From the NCBI GenBank assembly GCA_965112735.1, contig OZ218963.1, positions 1,426,001-1,490,000 on the forward strand: a stretch of 64,000 nt of DNA, in the 5' to 3' direction. The translations under genes were made by a program, and so were the position numbers. This document shows, piece after piece, positions 9,794 to 20,590 of this stretch (position 1 is the first letter of the stretch; the number at the start of each line of letters is the position of its first letter). A model generated the notes under the pieces. It made no database searches, had not been told where the DNA came from, and was given only the letters and a program-made list of their open reading frames with translations. This DNA comes from Phaeosaccion multiseriatum (lineage: Eukaryota > Protista > Ochrophyta, other classes).

Positions 9794-12700
9794 ATGCCTG
9801 CACGGGCGGTGGACGCCGCGGGGGGTTCGGCGAGGACGAAGGACGTGCTCCTCGCGGCATTATCGGCTGCGTGCGTATTGCTGGCGCTTAGCAGCAAGCT
9901 GGGGGGCAAAGTGGTGGACGGTAATGACCCCTCATCCGCAGTAGGAGCAGTGCCAGGAGGCGTGCTCAGCAGGTCTCTGTCGGTGGGGGGGTCCGAAGAG
10001 CTGCCGCAACGGACGAACGCGTCAATGGCGCTGGTGACCCCGTTCTGGTCGGGAGATGCAACGCTGCTCGAGGAGGCTCTTGGCGACTCCTGGGTCGGCC
10101 TTGATTGCTCCACCACGGGTCCTCCCGAGGCGAAGATGGACCTCATTTTGTACTATGCCTACGGCCCAGACAAGATCAGTGATTCCACGTTGGCTGCTGT
10201 GCCGGACTCCCTGCGCTCGTGCTTCAGGGACGTCAAGTTGGCGTTCGCGCACCTCACGGCTGAAGAGGACGGGTACCCCGCAGGACCTTCGCATCAGTTC
10301 TACAACATCTTCCTCAATGAGGAAGTCAGTCGTGGACGTCTCCGCCTCCTCCCACAGAAGGCTCAGCAAGAAGAACGAGCAGGTGAGAAGACGTCTCCAG
10401 GTTTTTTCTGCTTTTATTTTTTATTTTTATTATTTCTGGTGCCCCGAATAGAACGATTGCGGCGTGCATAGGCTTCCCTGCCCCTTGGCCTAATCTTCTT
10501 GTACCCTCCTCCTCCCCATCATTGCCGTGGGCATCCACAGTCCGGCACGCACATTGTGCACGCCTCCGTCAAGAGCGGAGGCTTCAAGAAGCACCAGGGG
10601 GAGCGATTCCTTGGAGGCGAAGACGAAGACACCTCTGGTTCCTTCACAGACACCGGCAGTGCCAAGGAGCAGGCGCTCTGTGCCGCTCTCGTCAGCACCA
10701 ACCCGCTGCCCGCCGGTATGTCCTACGCCTTTGACGCAACATGCCGGACCGGACCGAGCCAGCGCTGGAACGGGTACCACTGCTACCAGGACGACACCAA
10801 CCCCGAAGACTCGCAGATCTGCCGCCAGTGCTACACCGATGTGGAGCTGGCACAGGAGGCCGAGAGGGCGCTCAGCCTGTCGCACACCGCTTACTCCGTC
10901 AAGCAAGTGCAGCAACACCTCACCGCGGAAACCCCCTCGGAGGGCTCGTGCACCATGAACCCGCACGTGATGATGTGCAGCACCAAGCTTCCACCCCCCG
11001 CCCCCAAGTGTGACGAGCGCTGCCTGTCCGACGGCGGGGGAGTTGCCATCTGTGACTCCCGCTGTACCATCGCTGCTACCACCACTTCCTCGGATGCTTC
11101 TCCATGGCTTGCACCGGGCGCATCCGAGGCGCTGGGGGAGCTGACGGCAGCGTGCAACTTTGGAAACTTTGGAGCCTCGTGCCGCTCCTGCATGCAGAGC
11201 ACTCAGAAGGCGCGGGACGTGCTGCTGAGCCACTCTCCTCTCTCCGTACCCATTCTGTGCGGCACGCTCGAGCCTCCGCTGGCGGCGTCTTGCGGGGTCA
11301 TAGCTGGATCAACAACTGCCACGGGTCGCAAGCTGCAGCTCGACGAGGACACGTGCGTCGACTTGGGGTGCGGGGAGGATGGCAACGCCGTGGACGATGG
11401 TAGATTCTGCGACGAATCTTGCCTCGGCGGGGGCTTGTTGCCTCTAGGATGCCCTTTAGGAGCGGTGGGTAGAAGCGGTAATGGCAATAATGGCATTGGC
11501 AACGGCAACGGCAATGGCAACGGTAATGGCAATAATGGCATTGGCAACGGCGGCAATGGCAACGGTAATGGCAATAATGGCAACGGCGGCAATGGCAATG
11601 GCAACGGCGGCAATGGCAATGGCAACGGCGGCAATGGCAACGGCAACAACAGAAGGAGGAGGCTCCAACAGGCCAGCAACCCTGCCTGCGGCACCACCCC
11701 CGGGTGCGGGGCGAGCCTTGGTTCGAGTGGAGCTGTTCAAACGTGCACAGAGGACCCCGCCTGCGCGACCGCTGGGCAAGGACTCGGCTGCATCCAAGCC
11801 GGTAACGTTTGTCGCTTCTGCGGATTCGGTCAGTTCCTTGACTGCGACGTGCCAATCGGAGGCCCATCGGGGAACGTCCCGACGGCCCCCAGCCCGGCAA
11901 CTCCCACAGCAGCTCCGGTCCCCACCCCTGCCGGAACACCGACACCCGGTACACCCCTTCCCGGAGGCGATGTGTGCGCCGCATTGAATGGGAGGTGTGC
12001 ATCTCCATCTGTATCCTGCATCCTGGACTCCGGCTGCCAGGTACGGTGCATGGGAAAGTCGATGGATGGTGTTGATACTGGCTGGACAAGCAATATAGAA
12101 TCGTCTTTGAGGGTAGCTACTGTGTGATCAAAGTCTCTCTCTCTATTTTTATGTTCGGCCCCTGACATGCTTCTGAGGCGACCCTGCTTCCTGCTTCTGG
12201 GCTGGCCTGTCTCAGAAGCATGTCAGGGGCCGATTATGTGTGTGACTAGCTACACCCACCGTAGCTATTGCTTGCCCCGTGCCGCATCGCAACTCACATA
12301 TTGTACGCACTTCTTTCCCTTCGCTTTTCCTTCTCCCCCTCTCGCTCTCTCCTCTCTCTCGCTCTACCCCTCCCCCTCTTTCTTCTCTCTCCTTCATTCG
12401 CCCTCCCTCCTCCTCCCTCCCTCCCCGTCTCCCTCCCTCAGAAACTGCCCTACGGGACGGGCTGCATTCACCCCTACAACACCGCCTGTCGCTTCTGCGG
12501 TGGGGGCATTGCTCTCGGGTGCGACACGTACCTGCCTCATGGTGGGCCCGTTGGTGGGACTCCGCCACCGCCTACCCCTCCTACACCTACACCACCCACA
12601 CCTACCCCACCCACACCTACCCCACCCACACCTACCCCTCCTACACCTACCCCACCCACACCTACCCCACCCACACCTACCCCACCCACACCTACCCCAC

Positions 12701-15700
12701 CCACCCCTTCCCCACCCACACCTACCCCACCCACCCCTACCCCACCCACACCTACCCCACCCACACCTACCCCACCCACACCTACCCCACCCACACCTAC
12801 CCCACCCACACCTACCCCACCCACCCCTACCCCACCTACACCTACCCCACCCACCCCTACCCCACCCACACCTACCCCACCAACGGGCTGTGCGGGAATC
12901 GCCTCGTGTGGAATCGGCGGCAACACTTGCGTACAAGACCCTGCTTGCGAGCTGGGCGGACCAGGAGGTACCGGATGCATCGCCCCCCTCAGCGCCACGA
13001 ACAGCTGCCGCTACTGTGGAGGCCGCTTCCTTGACTGCGACACGGCTTTGGGTGGCAGCCCCATCTCCCCCACACCTACGCCCCCCTCTCCCACCCCTAC
13101 TCCTCCTACACCTACCCCACCCACCCCTACCCCACCGACACCTACCCCACCCACCCCTACCCCACCCACACCTACCCCACCCACACCTACCCCACCCACC
13201 CCTACCCCACCCACACCTACCCCACCCACACCTACCCCACCCACACCTACCCCACCCACACCTACCCCACCCACCCCTACCCCACCTACACCTATCCCAC
13301 CCACCCCTACCCCACCCACACCTACCCCACCAACGGGCTGTGCGGGAATCGCCTCGTGTGGAATCGGCGGCAACACTTGCGTACAAGACCCTGCTTGCGA
13401 GCTGGGCGGACCAGGAGGTACCGGATGCATCGCCCCCCTCAGCGCCACGAACAGCTGCCGCTACTGTGGAGGCCGCTTCCTTGACTGCGACACGGCTTTG
13501 GGTGGCAGCCCCATCTCCCCCACACCTACGCCCCCCTCTCCCACCCCTACTCCTCCTACACCTACCCCACCCACCCCTACCCCACCCACACCTACCCCAC
13601 CCACACCTACCCCACCCACACCTACCCCACCCACCCCCACCCCACCCACCCCTACCCCACCCACACCTACCCCACCCACATCTACCCCACCCACACCGAC
13701 CCCACCCACCCCTACACCACCCACACCTACCCCACCCACACCTACCCCACCCACCCCTACCCCACCCACACCTACCCCACCCACACCTACGCCACCTACC
13801 CCTACCCCACCCACCCCTACCCCACCCACCCCTACCCCACCCACCCCTACCCCACCCACTCCTACTCCACCCACACCTACCCTACCCACACCTACCCCAC
13901 CCACCCCTACACCACCCTCGGGATGTGCCGGAATCGCTTCATGCAGCTTGACCGCATGCGTACAAGACCCGGCCTGCTCCGGCGGGGGAGGGCTCGGCTG
14001 CATTGCCCCCCTGGCCGAGACGAACGGCTGCCGCTACTGTGGGTACAATCAATTCCTGGCCTGTGACGTGGCGTTGGGAGGCGGGCCCATCGCTCCATCT
14101 CCCACACCTACCCCACCCACCCCTACTCCTCCTACACCTACCCCACCCACCCCTACCCCACCCACCCCTACACCACCCACACCTACCCCTCCTACACCTA
14201 CCCCACCCACACCTACACCACCCACACCTACCCCTCCTACACCTACCCCACCCACCCCTACCCCGCCCACACCTACCCCACCCACCCCTACCCCACCCAC
14301 CCCTACACCACCCACACCTACCCCACCCACACCTACCCCACCTACCCCTACCCCACCCACACCTACCCCACCCACCCCCACCCCACCCACCCCTACCCCA
14401 CCCACTCCTACCCCACCCACCCCTACCCCACCCACACCTACCCCACCCACCCCTACCCCACCCACACCTACCCCACCTACACCTACCCCACCCACCCCTA
14501 CCCCACCCACCCCTACCCCACCCACACCTACCCCACCCACACCTACCCCACCCACCCCTACCCCACCCACACCTACCCCACCCACACCTACCCCACCCAC
14601 CCCTACCCCTCCTACACCTACCCCACCCACACCTACCCCACCCACACCTGCGGCCACTGCTGCCCCTTCCAATTTTGGTAAGTTGACAAAGGCGAGAGGC
14701 GAGGTTGGCTGGTCACTATGGCTCAGTGTGTTGTGAGAGCAAGCTGCCAAGAGGTTGTGTGAGTGTGAGCAGATATATACGCGCTTGATGAACTTTGTCT
14801 GACTTTGCTCGGTGCCTTCCCGCCGTCCCGACCCCTCTTCTCTATCTGTCTCCTTCTCCCCCCCCTGTCGCTCTCTGCTCGGTAACATGATGCAGAGCTC
14901 ATTCTCGTGCCAGAGACCGACGAGGACGAGATTGGCACAGAACCTAGCTACGCATGGACTCAAGAGGCAAGCATTGACGAAGCGCCCCTCCTGGATAACG
15001 AGGGGTGTGGTGAGGCTGAACCTGCCTCCGACCAACCCACCGTGGAGTACACTTTCTCCACTCCCGTGGACGGGTTGCTGACCATTGACACCTGCGGTTC
15101 GGATACGAACTTCGACACTCAAATTGCTCTCTTCACTGCTGATACCCTCACGTGCCTGCCCGGTGTGGTGGGTGGGAGTATCGAGGGTGGTTGCACCGAT
15201 GGAGGCTTCATTGTGGCAGACGTGCCTGTCGTGGCGGGCGGAGAGTACGTCGTTCGCGTGTACGAGTCTCCGAGTTCGACCCGACGAAGGAGGAGGTTAC
15301 AGTTCGGACTATTGAAGAACTTCGTACTTAGGCTTGAATTGGTGACACGTGAGTGAGCGAGTGGGAGGGAGAATGGGTCCAGGCAGGGTGGAGCCATGTG
15401 CAGCGCACATGCTTCCACACGACTTTCATTCGCCCTCTCTCTCCCACTCCCTCCGTTCCTCCTTCCTCCCCGTACGCCTCCAACCTCCCACCCACAGCCC
15501 TAAACGCCTTGTGCCGCTTTTGCTACTCGACCGAGGCGGAGCTGTTGGCCGCTGAGGTGCAGTTTGCCGGCGAGTTCTCAGCCGGCGGTATCTTGTGCTC
15601 GAATGTTGGTGCGACCCCAAGCCCGGCGCCAGCCCCGACCCCTCCTCCGGTCTACGTGACGGCCGCAGGAGCCACGCGTGGTCTGTCCGTCGCCACTCGA

Positions 15701-18296
15701 CAGCTGGCCCACCTGCTCGACAGCGAGCAAATGAAGAGCAAGGAGGAGGAGGAGGAGGAGGAGGAGGAGATGCCCATCACCCTGGACGACGCCCTCAGTG
15801 GAGAGGGTATGTGCGTGTTTATGACGGCGTACGCGGACTTCCACGCAGAGGCGGCGGAGTCTGTACGGTCCCTGGAACTTCACTGGCCTAGTGTGGACAA
15901 GATTGCCATTGGCGTTCACCCGCACGACTTCTTCGTCTTCAACCGCACTATGGGGGGCCGTCTCTCGGCAGGCACTGTCGTCCAAGTGAGTGCGTTGGTG
16001 GTACAGACAGAGGGAGGGAGGGGAGGGAGAAAGAGCACGCACACACATAGGCATACATACGCACACTCACTCACACACACCCCCTCCCTCCCTGTATCAC
16101 CAACAGGTGCACAACTCCACCATGCCCTCCCTCACCGCCCTGTGGGCCGACGAGTACTGCGGACCCGACACGTCTATCATCTACTACCTCACCGTGGGCA
16201 CCGTGCTCACCCGCCCACCCCTGCGAAAGGATGTGTACGACATCAACGGAAATCTCCTGCTGGACTGGGCCCCACTGGCCATCGCCCAGGGCAGCACTGC
16301 AGAGGAAGCCCAGATTGTGGAGGAGTCTAATCTGTTCGTTCGCGAGCTGTTCGGCTTCGAGGCCAAGGCCTTTGGTGGGGACAGCTCCGAGGTGCTGCTG
16401 CCCGCGGATGTGAACAAGCGCCTCCGGGATGAGCTGCCCAAGTTCTCCTCGGCACTCCAAGTCGAGGAGGCTGCTCTCGCTACTATCGATGACGAAAGCC
16501 TCCTGCTGGACGGAGTGGACGACGACATCAAGCGTCTGCTCCACCCCTACGCCATCAATATGGTGCAGCTCCTGTGCCAGATGGCCTTCTCGCAGCCGTC
16601 CGCTACCATCCCCATGGGCTTCCACAACCCCTCCGCGTGGAACGAGTACAATGTGTTCAGCAGCGACGTCAAGGTGTGGGACATCCCCCCCAACCGTCCG
16701 CCCTTCACCTGCCGAGCGGACTTGCAGCTCGCCAAGACGCACAACATCGCCCCCGAACTGCGCAAGATGGCGGAGGGGAGTCGCCACTGCGAGTTCGGAT
16801 GGCTGCTGTCCCTCAGGGACGAGGCCGAGGATGGGAGGCTGCCCTGGAAGGAGGACGTGGAATTCTCGGAGGAATGGGATGTGTCCATGCCCGACATTGC
16901 CTCCGACCCCGCCTTTGCCGTCAGCGTCGTCCTCCGGGCCGTGGTGGGTGGCATCAACCTTGTCCCCACGAGCCTGAGCTCCATCATTGCCCGCGTGCCC
17001 TTCGCCACCGAGGTGGTGGTGTTGGGTACCGAGGCGGACCAGGCCCAATTGCAAGAGGTTGTGGCCTTCTTCCTGCACGGCAAGACACCTCCTCCCTTCC
17101 CCATCCGACTCATGATCGAGGAGGAGGAGGAGGGCATGGATGCGTACGCCCAACAGCAGTACAACAAACTGCGCTCTGACCTCTTCACCTCCCCGGAGAG
17201 TGCCTTTGTCCTGCACATGGACTCCGACAAGGTAAGAAGGGGAAGGGAGACAGATATGAAGGGATGGAAGAAGGGAGAGAGGGAGCATCACTCACTCATC
17301 GCACTCACTCACTCGCACAAGCACCACTCGCTCACTCACTCACTCTCTCCCTCCTTCCCCCGCCCACTCCCTGACCCCGACAAGGTGATTTTCGAGGACG
17401 TCGACTACCGCCACCTCTTCCGCTTTGGCAAGCCCGTGCTGCCGTACCGCTCCTACACGGACGACGAAGGAGACGCAATGGTAAGAGAAGGAAGGAGCAA
17501 AGGCTATGCATACTGTGGTTTGTGGTTTCTGGAGGGGGCTGGTGGGGGGGAGGGTGGCGGATAGTGTCGGCAGTACTTGGAGGTTGCTTCTTCTGTGGCT
17601 CTTGTGTTACTTCTGGAGCCGCGAGAAGCAAATGCATTACTTTTTCGACAGCTACCTCAATCCCCTTCCCCTCCCCCTCTCTACCTCCCCTCTCCCTCTG
17701 TGTGAGCTCAGGTCTGCTGGCAAGCGGGCACATCCAAAGCGATGGGCGCTTGGCAGGACCTCGACTTCTCCCTCTACGACACCCTCGTGTACCCCAAGGC
17801 CATGTACCCGGCCCTGCGCGAGCACCTCAGCGAGCAGAACGGCATGAGCTTTATGGACTTCATGCGCTCTCGTCAAGAGGGCTCCTGCAGCGGCGATGCG
17901 CTCAAGGCAGCCCGCAAGTGCGCTACTGAAGGCACCCTGCACAACTGCCCCGGCGCGGAGACCCTCTTCTCCGACGCGAGTGCCATGGGCGCCTTCCTTC
18001 ACGCCTTCATGTCGGAGGAGGTGGAGGCCATTCCCGTGGACCCCTGGGGGCGAACGGCCTCGTCCTACGCTCGCACCACCACCATTCTCGACTGGGCATG
18101 CCAGGCCTCGGCTCCGCTCTTCGCTGGGCTGAATGAGAAGCAGCGTACCAGCTACCTCACAAGTCTCGCGAGTGTGTCTTCGGACAAGGATTGCAAGGCG
18201 CTGGCCTATGCGTGGGACTCTGCGGTGGCCAAAGAGCGTATGGAGAAGAAGGTCGCTCAGGGCAAGGTCTTCAAGCCGCTGTCGGCGAGGCAGTAG
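9794..18296 (+). CDS. ~2,300-aa membrane-anchored/secreted mosaic protein: GT-like N-terminus, Cys-rich modules, (PTPPT)n rods, PPC-like beta domain, C-terminal glycosyltransferase-like domains
   Basis: All junctions are GT-AG and phase-compatible: 9794-10324, 10541-12040, 12442-14677, 14896-15348, 15498-15985, 16107-17231, 17385-17480, 17712-18296. N-terminal hydrophobic anchor VLLAALSAACVLLAL; repeated C-x-x-DP-x-C...G-x-GC...CR(F/Y)CG modules; TIDTCGSDTNFDTQIALF; QQYNKLRSDLF...VLHMDSD (DxD). The exon 1-exon 2 join is the least certain. Confidence 0.8.
12156..12232. mobile_element. Minimal 77-bp MITE (family A) in an intron
   Basis: Perfect 22-bp TIRs: CGGCCCCTGACATGCTTCTGAG (12156-12177) and CTCAGAAGCATGTCAGGGGCCG (12211-12232). 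Confidence 0.8.
12560..14650 (+). repeat. Coding 15-bp minisatellite (PTPPT)n in four blocks, with a 450-bp internal duplication
   Basis: CCTACCCCACCCACA-type units. The Cys module at ~12884-13090 recurs essentially identically at ~13334-13540. Confidence 0.95.
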
Positions 18297-18660: not shown

Positions 18661-19025
18661 CTGCGATTTCGCGGTTGAGTGGCACTTTTGACGCCCCGTG
18701 AATTTTTTTTGACGCCAAATGACGATTGCTTTGACGACGTTTGACGACGTTTGAACCCCTTTTTTACCCACTTTAAAGCCCTATTTGACGCACCCTTTGA
18801 CGCCCTTTGACGCCCTTTCCCGTGATTTTTTTTTACGTGATTTTTTTTAGACGAAAATAAGGCGAATGAAGATAAAAAAAAGGGCGTCAAAGGGCGTCAA
18901 AGTGCGTCAAATAGCAAATAGGGCTTTTTGGAGTGGGTAAAAAAGGGGTACAAAAGTCGTCAAACATCGTCATTTGGCGTCAAAAAAAATTCACGGGGCG
19001 TCAAAAGTGCCACTCAACCGCGAAA
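18661..19025. mobile_element. Palindromic TGACG-rich MITE (family C), right end slightly truncated
   Basis: Preceded by TA. Left arm CTGCGATTTCGCGGTTGAGTGGCACTTTTGACGCCCCGTGAA is mirrored by TTCACGGGGCGTCAAAAGTGCCACTCAACCGCGAAA. Same family as 48121-48842. Confidence 0.85.
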
Positions 19026-19124
19026 AAAACTGAACCACCTCAGAGGGTTCTTCGTCAAAGAAAAGCGCTAGTAAGGCCATCCTCTCCATCCTCCCTCCCT
19101 CCTCCTTCTTCTAGACCTCAACCA

Positions 19125-20590
19125 ATGTCCCTCTCATTTTCCCTCACGAGGGCGGCAGCCTTTCAGAGGGCTTTAGCCGCGGCAAGAGCAGCCGCGTCGG
19201 CAGCTCCGGCTCCAGTGAAGAGGGGAGATGCAGCAGCAGGCTATGTGTCCCACAGCTGCAGCACTGGCACCCTCGTGTCCTTTGCTACGACTGCTACTGT
19301 GGTGAGGGGGGGAAGATGTGCCCATAGCAGTGGTTGCCGGAATTTTATCGTTAATAGCAGCAGCAGCAGCAGCAGCAGCGGGAGTGGGAGTGCGGGAAGA
19401 GCAAAGGAGGGCTCCATCCGAATCGGAGGTGGCGGAGGGGTGCGGAGGAGGTGGTTGAGTAGCACTAGCGGCAGCGGTAGCGGCCCAGTAGCAGGAGAAG
19501 GAGAAGCAGATGCGGATGGATCGACGAGAGGGGGGGGAAGCGGGGCAGAGGCAACAGAAGGAGGAGGGGGAGGGGGCGGGGAGAGTGAAGACGATCTGCG
19601 GGAGGAACTGGATCGGTGTCAGGAAATGCTCGCCACCCTAAAGGGAGAGATGGACGATCTGGCAGAGGAGAACAAGAAGACCAGGGAGAAGATGCTGTAC
19701 ACGTTGTCCGAGGCGGAAACCACGCGCTCCATTGCCAAGCGAGATGTGGAGAATGCCAAAAGGTGGGCCTTCTTTGTCTATCTCAAGGGCAATGGCAGAG
19801 AGGGTTGCTAGGAGGGATTCAATGCTAATTACATGCCACTCCCTCTCTCCTGCTGCGTCTGTCCCACCCCCGCGTGCAGGTTCTCCATCACGAGCTTTGC
19901 AAAGTCCCTTCTGGACGTGGCGGACAATCTGCACCGCGCGATCGATGCCGTCCCACCGGAGGTGAGTGCCGTGCAGTGGGGTGACGCGTTATATGCAATT
20001 AATTGTGTACTCCCTTCCTCGCCCTCTCACATTCTCTCCGTCTTCCTTCCCTTCAGGAGAAGATTTCCAACCCCCAACTGGCGACTCTCTTGGAAGGCGT
20101 GGAGATGACAGAGGCGAGTTTGCAAAAGGCGTTTGCTTCGCAGAAACTGACGCGGTACGGGGAGATCGGAGACACCTTCGACCCGGAGCTGCACGACGCC
20201 ATGTTCGAGTATCCTGACCCCAGGTAGGGAGAGAGGGACAGGGAGAGACGGTTGAGCACGGCCCACCCACCCCCCCCCAACGCCCTCCAATTCCTCTCGT
20301 CATGTACGCATACGTACGTCCATCACGAGACATACAGGCCTCTACATGCCTCCTCCTCCTAGGTCTTATCTCACCCAACCCTTGCCCTTCCTCCAATCTG
20401 GCTCTCATTTATTTTTCTCTCTATGCGGCCATCTGTCTTCCTCCGTTTAATTCGACTTTCCCAACTGTTGAATCGACCCCCCGCGTGCAGCAAGGAAGCG
20501 GGCACCATTGGCCAGCTCGTCAAGCCCGGATACACGCTGAACGACCGCGTCATCCGAGCTGCCAATGTAGGCGTCGTTAAGAAGAACTGA
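19125..20590 (+). CDS. grpE: GrpE nucleotide-exchange factor, probably mitochondrial
   Basis: Exons 19125-19762, 19880-19961, 20057-20223, 20491-20590. Motifs FAKSLLDVADNL, FDPELHDAMF, GYTLNDRVIRAANVGV. Arg/Ala/Ser-rich presequence-like N-terminus. Confidence 0.95.

Follow-up and report, generated by a model that had tools for sequence, protein, structure and literature searches.

An eight-exon gene of Phaeosaccion multiseriatum combining glycosyltransferase-like domains with a Cys-rich and Pro/Thr-rich scaffold

Positions 9,794-18,296 of a 64,000-nucleotide (nt) stretch from the ochrophyte Phaeosaccion multiseriatum (assembly GCA_965112735.1, contig OZ218963.1, positions 1,426,001-1,490,000, forward strand; hereafter the window, with positions given in its own numbering) hold a series of open reading frames in which glycosyltransferase-like segments are combined with Cys-rich modules and long Pro/Thr rods. 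The question raised by this locus is whether such unlike segments make up one gene and, if so, what kind of protein it would encode. In the account presented here, which is considered rather probable, they form a single eight-exon gene of an uncharacterised family with a two-headed transferase plan, this copy carrying the rods, a PPC-like exon and a recent deletion.

One gene and its relatives

The open stretches lie in three frames and are linked across short introns into an eight-exon model (Table 1). Each junction was read and then checked by script; for exons 2-8, the borders are GT..AG with compatible phases, the donors are of the GT[AG]NG type and the introns measure 121-401 nt. A preliminary description of the sequence had proposed eight phase-compatible exons encoding some 2,300 amino acids (aa), and this stands for exons 2-8, while exon 1 reaches exon 2 in frame solely through the non-consensus donor GAA/GTCAGT at 10325. 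Given this donor, the joined frame comprises 2,337 codons without a stop. The joined reading was used for this length and stop count alone, searches and folds having been made per exon or on intact relatives. The signal anchor that had been proposed was recovered as a hydrophobic stretch of 19 residues (residues 18-36, Kyte-Doolittle mean 2.1).

A search of the genome (67 Mb in 22 contigs, chromosome-scale, the gene's own contig being C14) revealed three paralogues, here called C14b, C5 and C3, and the four full-length genomic loci share the order of anchor, N-terminal domain (N-domain), Cys array and C-terminal pair. A further copy on C8 is partial, with neither an N-domain nor a Cys-rich region detected nearby, and probably represents a fragment of a gene. 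Beyond this genome, a full HMMER search with exon 6 against 1.84 billion representatives returned 66 relatives, the best of which (8e-43, 38% identity) is an unnamed protein from a public run assembly, with named proteins reaching 1e-27; a word-based protein search with the same exon gave nothing inside its allowed length band. The named relatives all come from Ectocarpus species, Hapterophycus, Scytosiphon and Phaeothamnion, are annotated as unnamed or as "expressed unknown protein" and have no Pfam families, and two contigs from public run assemblies also encode relatives with the same order of parts. In the more complete of these models, a single predicted protein comprises the N-domain, the Cys modules and the first of the C-terminal domains. 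Ectocarpus CBJ32724 and several unnamed Ectocarpus, Scytosiphon and run-assembly proteins are homologues with the N-domain, CRxC[YF] modules and C-terminal pair in the order of the window gene, and the cluster of Ectocarpus Esi_0117_0034 (CBJ28663) showed Cys modules and the C-terminal region alone.

The preliminary description had also raised the question of whether homologues lack the central block of the protein. The brown-algal relatives keep the Cys modules, but the PTPPT rods are missing there, the linkers being short or rich in Lys and Trp (K/W-rich). The brown-algal and Phaeothamnion relatives further differ in having no PPC-like exon and an intact N-domain, and none has been characterised. 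The window copy fits the family plan (anchor, N-terminal GT-A domain, CRxC[YF] modules, C-terminal pair) except for the deleted second half of its N-domain.

That two or three adjacent genes were wrongly joined in the preliminary description is very improbable. The join of exons 1 and 2 does depend on a weak donor, but the other gaps have matching phases and regular borders, one Cys module is interrupted by intron 2, exon 5 opens in the middle of another, and the domain order is the same in the three paralogues and in single predicted proteins of Ectocarpus, Scytosiphon and Phaeothamnion. Since this order is kept in the single chains of relatives and the Cys modules straddle introns, a merger of separate genes is unlikely and, judging from the sequence, the segments form one gene, as had been described. 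The same conservation of order among paralogues and relatives indicates that the gene is a member of a lineage-restricted family and not a chance fusion. A literature search on the family, including by its Ectocarpus accessions, found no paper, and with no Pfam family either, the earlier view that the architecture is uncharacterised holds.

Intron 6 (17232-17384), which the intron-free C3 paralogue does not have, is bordered at its two splice sites by a direct repeat of 10 nt, CCGACAAGGT. The possibility that this intron is a mobile introner was rejected, as its 157 genome matches are all confined to its TCAC microsatellite. Downstream of the gene, the next open frame (18933-19811, forward strand) has a C-terminal coiled stretch that may recall a GrpE-type co-chaperone.

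Table 1. Coordinates of the gene, its internal features and its genomic copies. Positions refer to the window, or to the contig named.
Feature	Position	Strand	Content
Exon 1	9794-10324	+	Start codon, signal anchor (9845-9901), first half of N-terminal GT-A domain; ends at weak GTCAGT donor
Deletion junction	10331-10332	+	~809 nt of the C14b paralogue absent; +1 frame shift
Exon 2	10541-12040	+	Cys-rich modules of brown-algal type, Gly/Asn repeat, first CRFCG module, start of module completed in exon 3
First CRFCG module	11744-11845	+	In exon 2
Exon 3	12442-14677	+	Four (PTPPT)n rods alternating with 8-Cys CRYCG modules
PTPPT rods	12559-12885, 13057-13335, 13507-13920, 14095-14670	+	In exon 3
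8-Cys CRYCG modules between rods	12928-13038, 13378-13488, 13957-14064	+	In exon 3
Exon 4	14896-15348	+	PPC/galactose-binding-like beta domain (suggested); ends RRRRRLQ
Exon 5	15498-15985	+	Cys-module tail (CRFCY), acidic linker, start of C-terminal GT-A domain 1 (no DxD)
Exon 6	16107-17231	+	Rest of GT-A domain 1 (YYLTVGT at the DxD place), inter-domain region, first half of GT-A domain 2 to HMDSD
Exon 7	17385-17480	+	Strand following DxD in GT-A domain 2 (VIFEDVDY...KPVLPY)
Exon 8	17712-18296	+	C-terminal half of GT-A domain 2 and stop codon
Paralogue C14b	C14:1.338-1.348 Mb	opposite	Same domain order
Paralogue C5	C5:0.322-0.334 Mb		Same domain order
Paralogue C3	C3:0.663-0.671 Mb		Same domain order
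Partial copy	C8:2066932-2067704		Exon 6 pieces, residues 1-41 and 87-245

Glycosyltransferase-like domains and a deletion in the first

The preliminary description expected a glycosyltransferase fold in the region 16107-18296, and this was tested by proxy on the C3 paralogue, whose C-terminal region lies in one intron-free frame and is 47-64% identical to the window copy per exon (35% in the last exon). The AlphaFold model of this region (predicted local distance difference test score, pLDDT, 78.9; predicted TM-score, pTM, 0.70) consists of two alpha/beta domains, both folding as GT-A. Its Foldseek matches include LARGE1 (2.8e-8) as well as GlcNAc-1-phosphotransferase, LH3, GlyE and GT6 enzymes. 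With VIA-align, GT-A matches span Z 12.5-16.6 overall, with the second domain nearest to GNPTAB and CpsY (Z 16.3-16.6, root-mean-square deviation (rmsd) 3.3-3.7 Å, 224-248 residues aligned) and with GT6 and other GT-A families at Z ~13. A second model was made from P0010, a relative from a public run assembly (pLDDT 75.3), in which the N-terminal domain takes a GT-A fold with GT8, GT24 and GT6 as its nearest matches (Z 13.4-12.5) and the first C-terminal domain matches GNPTAB (Z 14.3). The two models thus show clear GT-A folds, with a GT8/GT6-like N-terminal domain and with both C-terminal domains closest to the Stealth/GlcNAc-1-phosphotransferase group.

For the second C-terminal domain, the Stealth proteins GNPTAB and Mycobacterium tuberculosis CpsY (Z 16.6, rmsd 3.5 Å, 240 residues) lead over other GT-A families by ~3 Z units, and for the first (Z 14.3) by ~1. 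This modelled likeness is limited to the fold, as searches for the Pfam regions Stealth_CR1-4 gave no match, both for every exon (E<=1) and for ten relatives (E<=0.01). Glyco_transf_8 likewise had no Pfam match in the exons or relatives, and the N-domain is incomplete in the window copy; the likeness to GT8 is one of fold alone, seen in P0010. Sub-threshold Pfam and NCBIfam matches to the exons (PipA, GtgA/GogA, MscK, a zinc ribbon and DUF7451) were dismissed as noise, and searches of PDB sequences with the alignment profiles A1, A2 and A3 were empty or gave a chance katanin match at E 0.95.

Two related C-terminal regions, with a DxD in the second alone, had been described from the sequence, and profile comparison bears this out: the regions are mutually homologous (hhalign probability 96.2%, E 2.3e-9, 164 columns), and the HMDSD of the second (17214-17228) aligns with YYLTVGT of the first. 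When the N-domain was compared by hhalign with each of the C-terminal domains, no signal emerged, and the N-domain and the C-terminal pair are therefore regarded as separate GT-A lineages. A phage link, raised by the virus-rich ESM Atlas neighbours of the N-domain, was dropped since tblastn against phage genomes gave no match.

Among known enzymes, LARGE1 (a GT8 xylosyltransferase with a GT49 glucuronyltransferase) and the chondroitin synthases are the top Foldseek matches of both models (2.8e-8, 3.7e-8) and follow a similar logic, being type II-anchored with two GT-As per chain. They share no sequence similarity with the family, however, the orientation of their domains is unlike (global TM ~0.2), and the family has three GT-As, one without a DxD, which are split by the Cys array and rods. 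The accessory GT-A of the lysyl hydroxylase LH3 offers another parallel, with a catalytic GT-A beside a degenerate copy without the metal motif, although the family has the opposite order, with its degenerate copy ahead of the other, as well as no hydroxylase domain and an unrelated sequence.

The N-terminal glycosyltransferase-like segment of the preliminary description thus corresponds to a GT-A domain predicted for the family, but just its first half is present in the window copy. Relative to C14b, ~809 nt are missing at 10331/10332, a stretch that takes in the last part of exon 1, the following intron and almost the whole of the next exon. That exon, encoding LEWDN...GHINGNALYN...FDVAIW...FPYAW, is present in C14b, C5 and C3, and its last 37 codons survive in the window copy. 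The lost part is the ExD-bearing half of the N-domain, matching the brown-algal relatives, and as LEWDN falls within it, one of the three GT-A domains of this copy retains a DxD or ExD. Two nt of microhomology are found at the junction, and the reading frame is shifted by +1. If the ancestral donor CAG/GTGAGA (10383) is used, the frame from the ATG at 9794 ends at codon 260, and the alternative GTCAGT departs from the seven other donors of the gene, in all of which position +3 is A or G.

Over the 237 nt on the 5' side of the junction, there is a single difference from C14b (99.6% identical, synonymous divergence (Ks) 0), against 92% identity in the 3' flank, and the deletion is on this ground taken to be recent; perhaps it is an aberrant conversion. 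The two C14 copies, which are inverted and ~100 kb apart, were compared over window positions 10095-18216 and C14:1338000-1347999. Their Ks varies by segment (0 in exon 1, 0.023 in exon 6, 0.13 in exon 8, 0.36 in exon 2), and this mosaic points to repeated gene conversion, with one tract boundary coinciding with the deletion junction. The Ka/Ks values between these copies (0.36-0.86) were not decisive as a test of function, reflecting mosaic gene conversion instead. As the deletion is recent, the intact frame downstream of it says little on function, and the window copy has about an even chance of being a newly formed pseudogene or a defective allele. An assembly artefact, with the true locus intact like the paralogue at C14:1.34 Mb, appears improbable. 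Assemblers can mis-join at a flank as close to a paralogue as the 5' one, but the assembly is chromosome-scale, the 3' side is clearly the window's own sequence and microhomology of 2 nt is typical of real deletions.

Scaffold modules, rods and exon 4

The four (PTPPT)n rods reported in the preliminary description were recovered in exon 3 with lengths of 109, 93, 138 and 192 aa (532 aa and 93 PTPPT units in total), and Tandem Repeats Finder gives a 15-nt period with 135 copies (score 1185, 12571-14649). Pro makes up 57-61% of these rods and Thr 37-39%; Ser is nearly absent, and Tyr is missing altogether. Their description as extensin-like has to be withdrawn, as they have neither Ser-Pro(3-5) nor Tyr cross-linking motifs. 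The Cys-rich CR[FY]CG modules were likewise found, five with eight Cys residues and the form C..DP.C..GC..CR[FY]CG..C, those of exon 3 being read in the same frame as the rods. Exon 2 additionally holds two modules of a second type (CRQCY at 10820 and CRSCM at 11180; CRSCM ... MC.T..PP), which is common to the brown-algal proteins. The modules at 12928-13038 and 13378-13488 have the same peptide and are spaced by 450 nt. A 450-nt unit of Cys module plus rod (12928-13488) has accordingly been duplicated in tandem, and the array expansion is taken to be recent. A Gly/Asn repeat (GNGNGN...) of ~57 aa with a 42-nt higher-order unit occurs at 11476-11647 in exon 2, where the C14b sequence is unrelated.

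The linkers between modules differ from copy to copy, with long PTPPT rods in both C14 copies and short Pro/Thr stretches in C3; in Ectocarpus the spacers are K/W-rich. Because the rods are absent or short in C3 and swapped for other linkers in Ectocarpus, they look like variable, fast-evolving linkers and not like a conserved substrate. They are best read as expanded spacers, which would probably be O-glycosylated. A comparison may be drawn with the chimeric arabinogalactan protein (AGP)-like proteins of brown algae which, according to the passages of PMC11468063 and PMC8307928 that cite Herve et al. (2016), are secreted and have Pro-rich glycomodule-type stretches fused to other domains. The fusion of Pro-rich stretches to other domains is shared by the window gene, whose rods are of PTPPT only.

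The domain encoded by exon 4 has no counterpart in any paralogue of this gene, and relatives of it occur in four unrelated genes of the genome. The likeness of this domain to PPC comes from a Pfam score (PF04151, 13.7 bits) below the cut-off of 25.9 and from a language-model lead, the nearest named ESM Atlas clusters being PPC and GBD_T9SS_assoc (0.95-0.96). A profile of the domain found no match among PDB sequences. A PPC- or galactose-binding-like domain is thereby suggested. On present sequence comparisons, this exon and the ~809-nt deletion are the two novelties particular to the window copy among the paralogues. Motifs of the form RxLQ or RRRRLQ stand at module borders (11327, 11657 and 15291), the exon-4 domain closes with RR..RRLQ in each of its five genomic copies, and these motifs recall the RXL processing motif of diatoms (PMC5525289).

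Functional readings of the family and of this copy

In the account favoured here, the plan of the family runs from a signal anchor through a GT8/GT6-like GT-A with an ExD and a Cys array with low-complexity linkers to two Stealth-like GT-As. Its members, if expressed, may be membrane-tethered nucleotide-sugar transferases of the secretory pathway, with two different catalytic heads and one non-catalytic GT-A copy, and the modelled Stealth-like fold would leave room for sugar-1-phosphate transfer. On this account, the linkers of the window copy have grown into the four rods, the PPC-like exon has been inserted from another gene family, and a very recent deletion of ~0.8 kb has taken the catalytic half of the N-domain and broken the ancestral frame. 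The copy would then be a newly formed pseudogene or, should splicing use the GTCAGT donor, encode a protein with the C-terminal DxD domain as its sole possibly active head on a long mucin-like stalk. Several points weigh against this account. No exon was assigned to a glycosyltransferase family through Pfam or NCBIfam, and PDB profile searches were likewise empty; the fold evidence comes by proxy, from the C3 paralogue (35-64% identical per exon) and from P0010 of another organism; a GT-A fold alone is no proof of activity, and some family members have no DxD. In addition, a Pro/Thr stalk of ~530 residues fits poorly with a Golgi-resident enzyme, and the deletion could stem from an assembly error between near-identical paralogues.

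The domain composition has also been considered in the light of other functions. Enzyme and substrate could be united in one chain, with the glycosyltransferase domains acting on their own PTPPT rods in a glycogenin-like self-priming that would yield a proteoglycan-type wall molecule. The rods are nearly pure Pro/Thr and thus classic O-glycosylation sites, the modelled N-domain of the family is akin in fold to GT8, the group of the self-glucosylating glycogenin, and chimeric AGP-like proteins are expressed by brown algae (PMC11468063, PMC8307928). This reading is nonetheless improbable: the rods are not conserved, the GT8-like head is deleted in the window copy, and nothing ties the glycosyltransferase-like domains to peptide acceptors or supports the rods as their own substrate. 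The RxLQ/RRLQ motifs suggest instead a polyprotein, cut into Cys-rich and Pro/Thr-rich wall glycoproteins and a separate enzyme part, in analogy to the diatom wall proteins that lose RXL domains by proteolysis (PMC5525289). The placing of these motifs at module borders and their recurrence at the end of every exon-4 domain copy agree with such processing, but there are three sites in all, and the one ending exon 4 is the only one to separate the rods from the C-terminal enzyme pair. The motif is also short and rich in Arg, and cleavage at it has been shown in diatoms alone; we regard a polyprotein as unlikely.

A non-catalytic wall or adhesion protein, in which the GT-A-shaped domains serve as pseudoenzymes or sugar-binding modules on a mucin-like scaffold, is about equally unlikely. 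The first C-terminal domain has no DxD family-wide and several relatives have lost that of the second too, and the ~530-aa stalk suggests an extracellular place, where nucleotide sugars are absent; however, the DxD of the second domain and its surrounding motifs are kept in the window copy, C14b, C5 and most brown-algal relatives, with an ExD in C3. The most far-reaching proposal is that the family is an unrecognised matrix-glycan synthase of brown algae and their relatives, with a GT8-like and a Stealth-like head, maybe a sugar-1-phosphate transferase and possibly one of the missing enzymes of fucan or other wall-polymer synthesis, the copies with rods being self-primed and stalk-mounted and building polymer on their own rods. 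In this full form it is a long shot.

Returning to the favoured account of a two-headed transferase family, the window copy constitutes a natural variant that illustrates the fast evolution of a linker array through rod expansion, exon insertion and gene conversion, and it may be a freshly disabled duplicate; the intact paralogues at C14 (1.34 Mb), C3 and C5 are better experimental targets. According to reviews, the genes and enzymes with which brown algae make sulfated fucans and their other matrix glycans have yet to be identified (PMC11468063). Being lineage-restricted, containing three GT-A-shaped domains and having been missed by Pfam, the family is a testable candidate for a role in matrix-glycan synthesis, and its Stealth-like fold raises the possibility that sugar-phosphate rather than plain glycosyl transfer may be involved.

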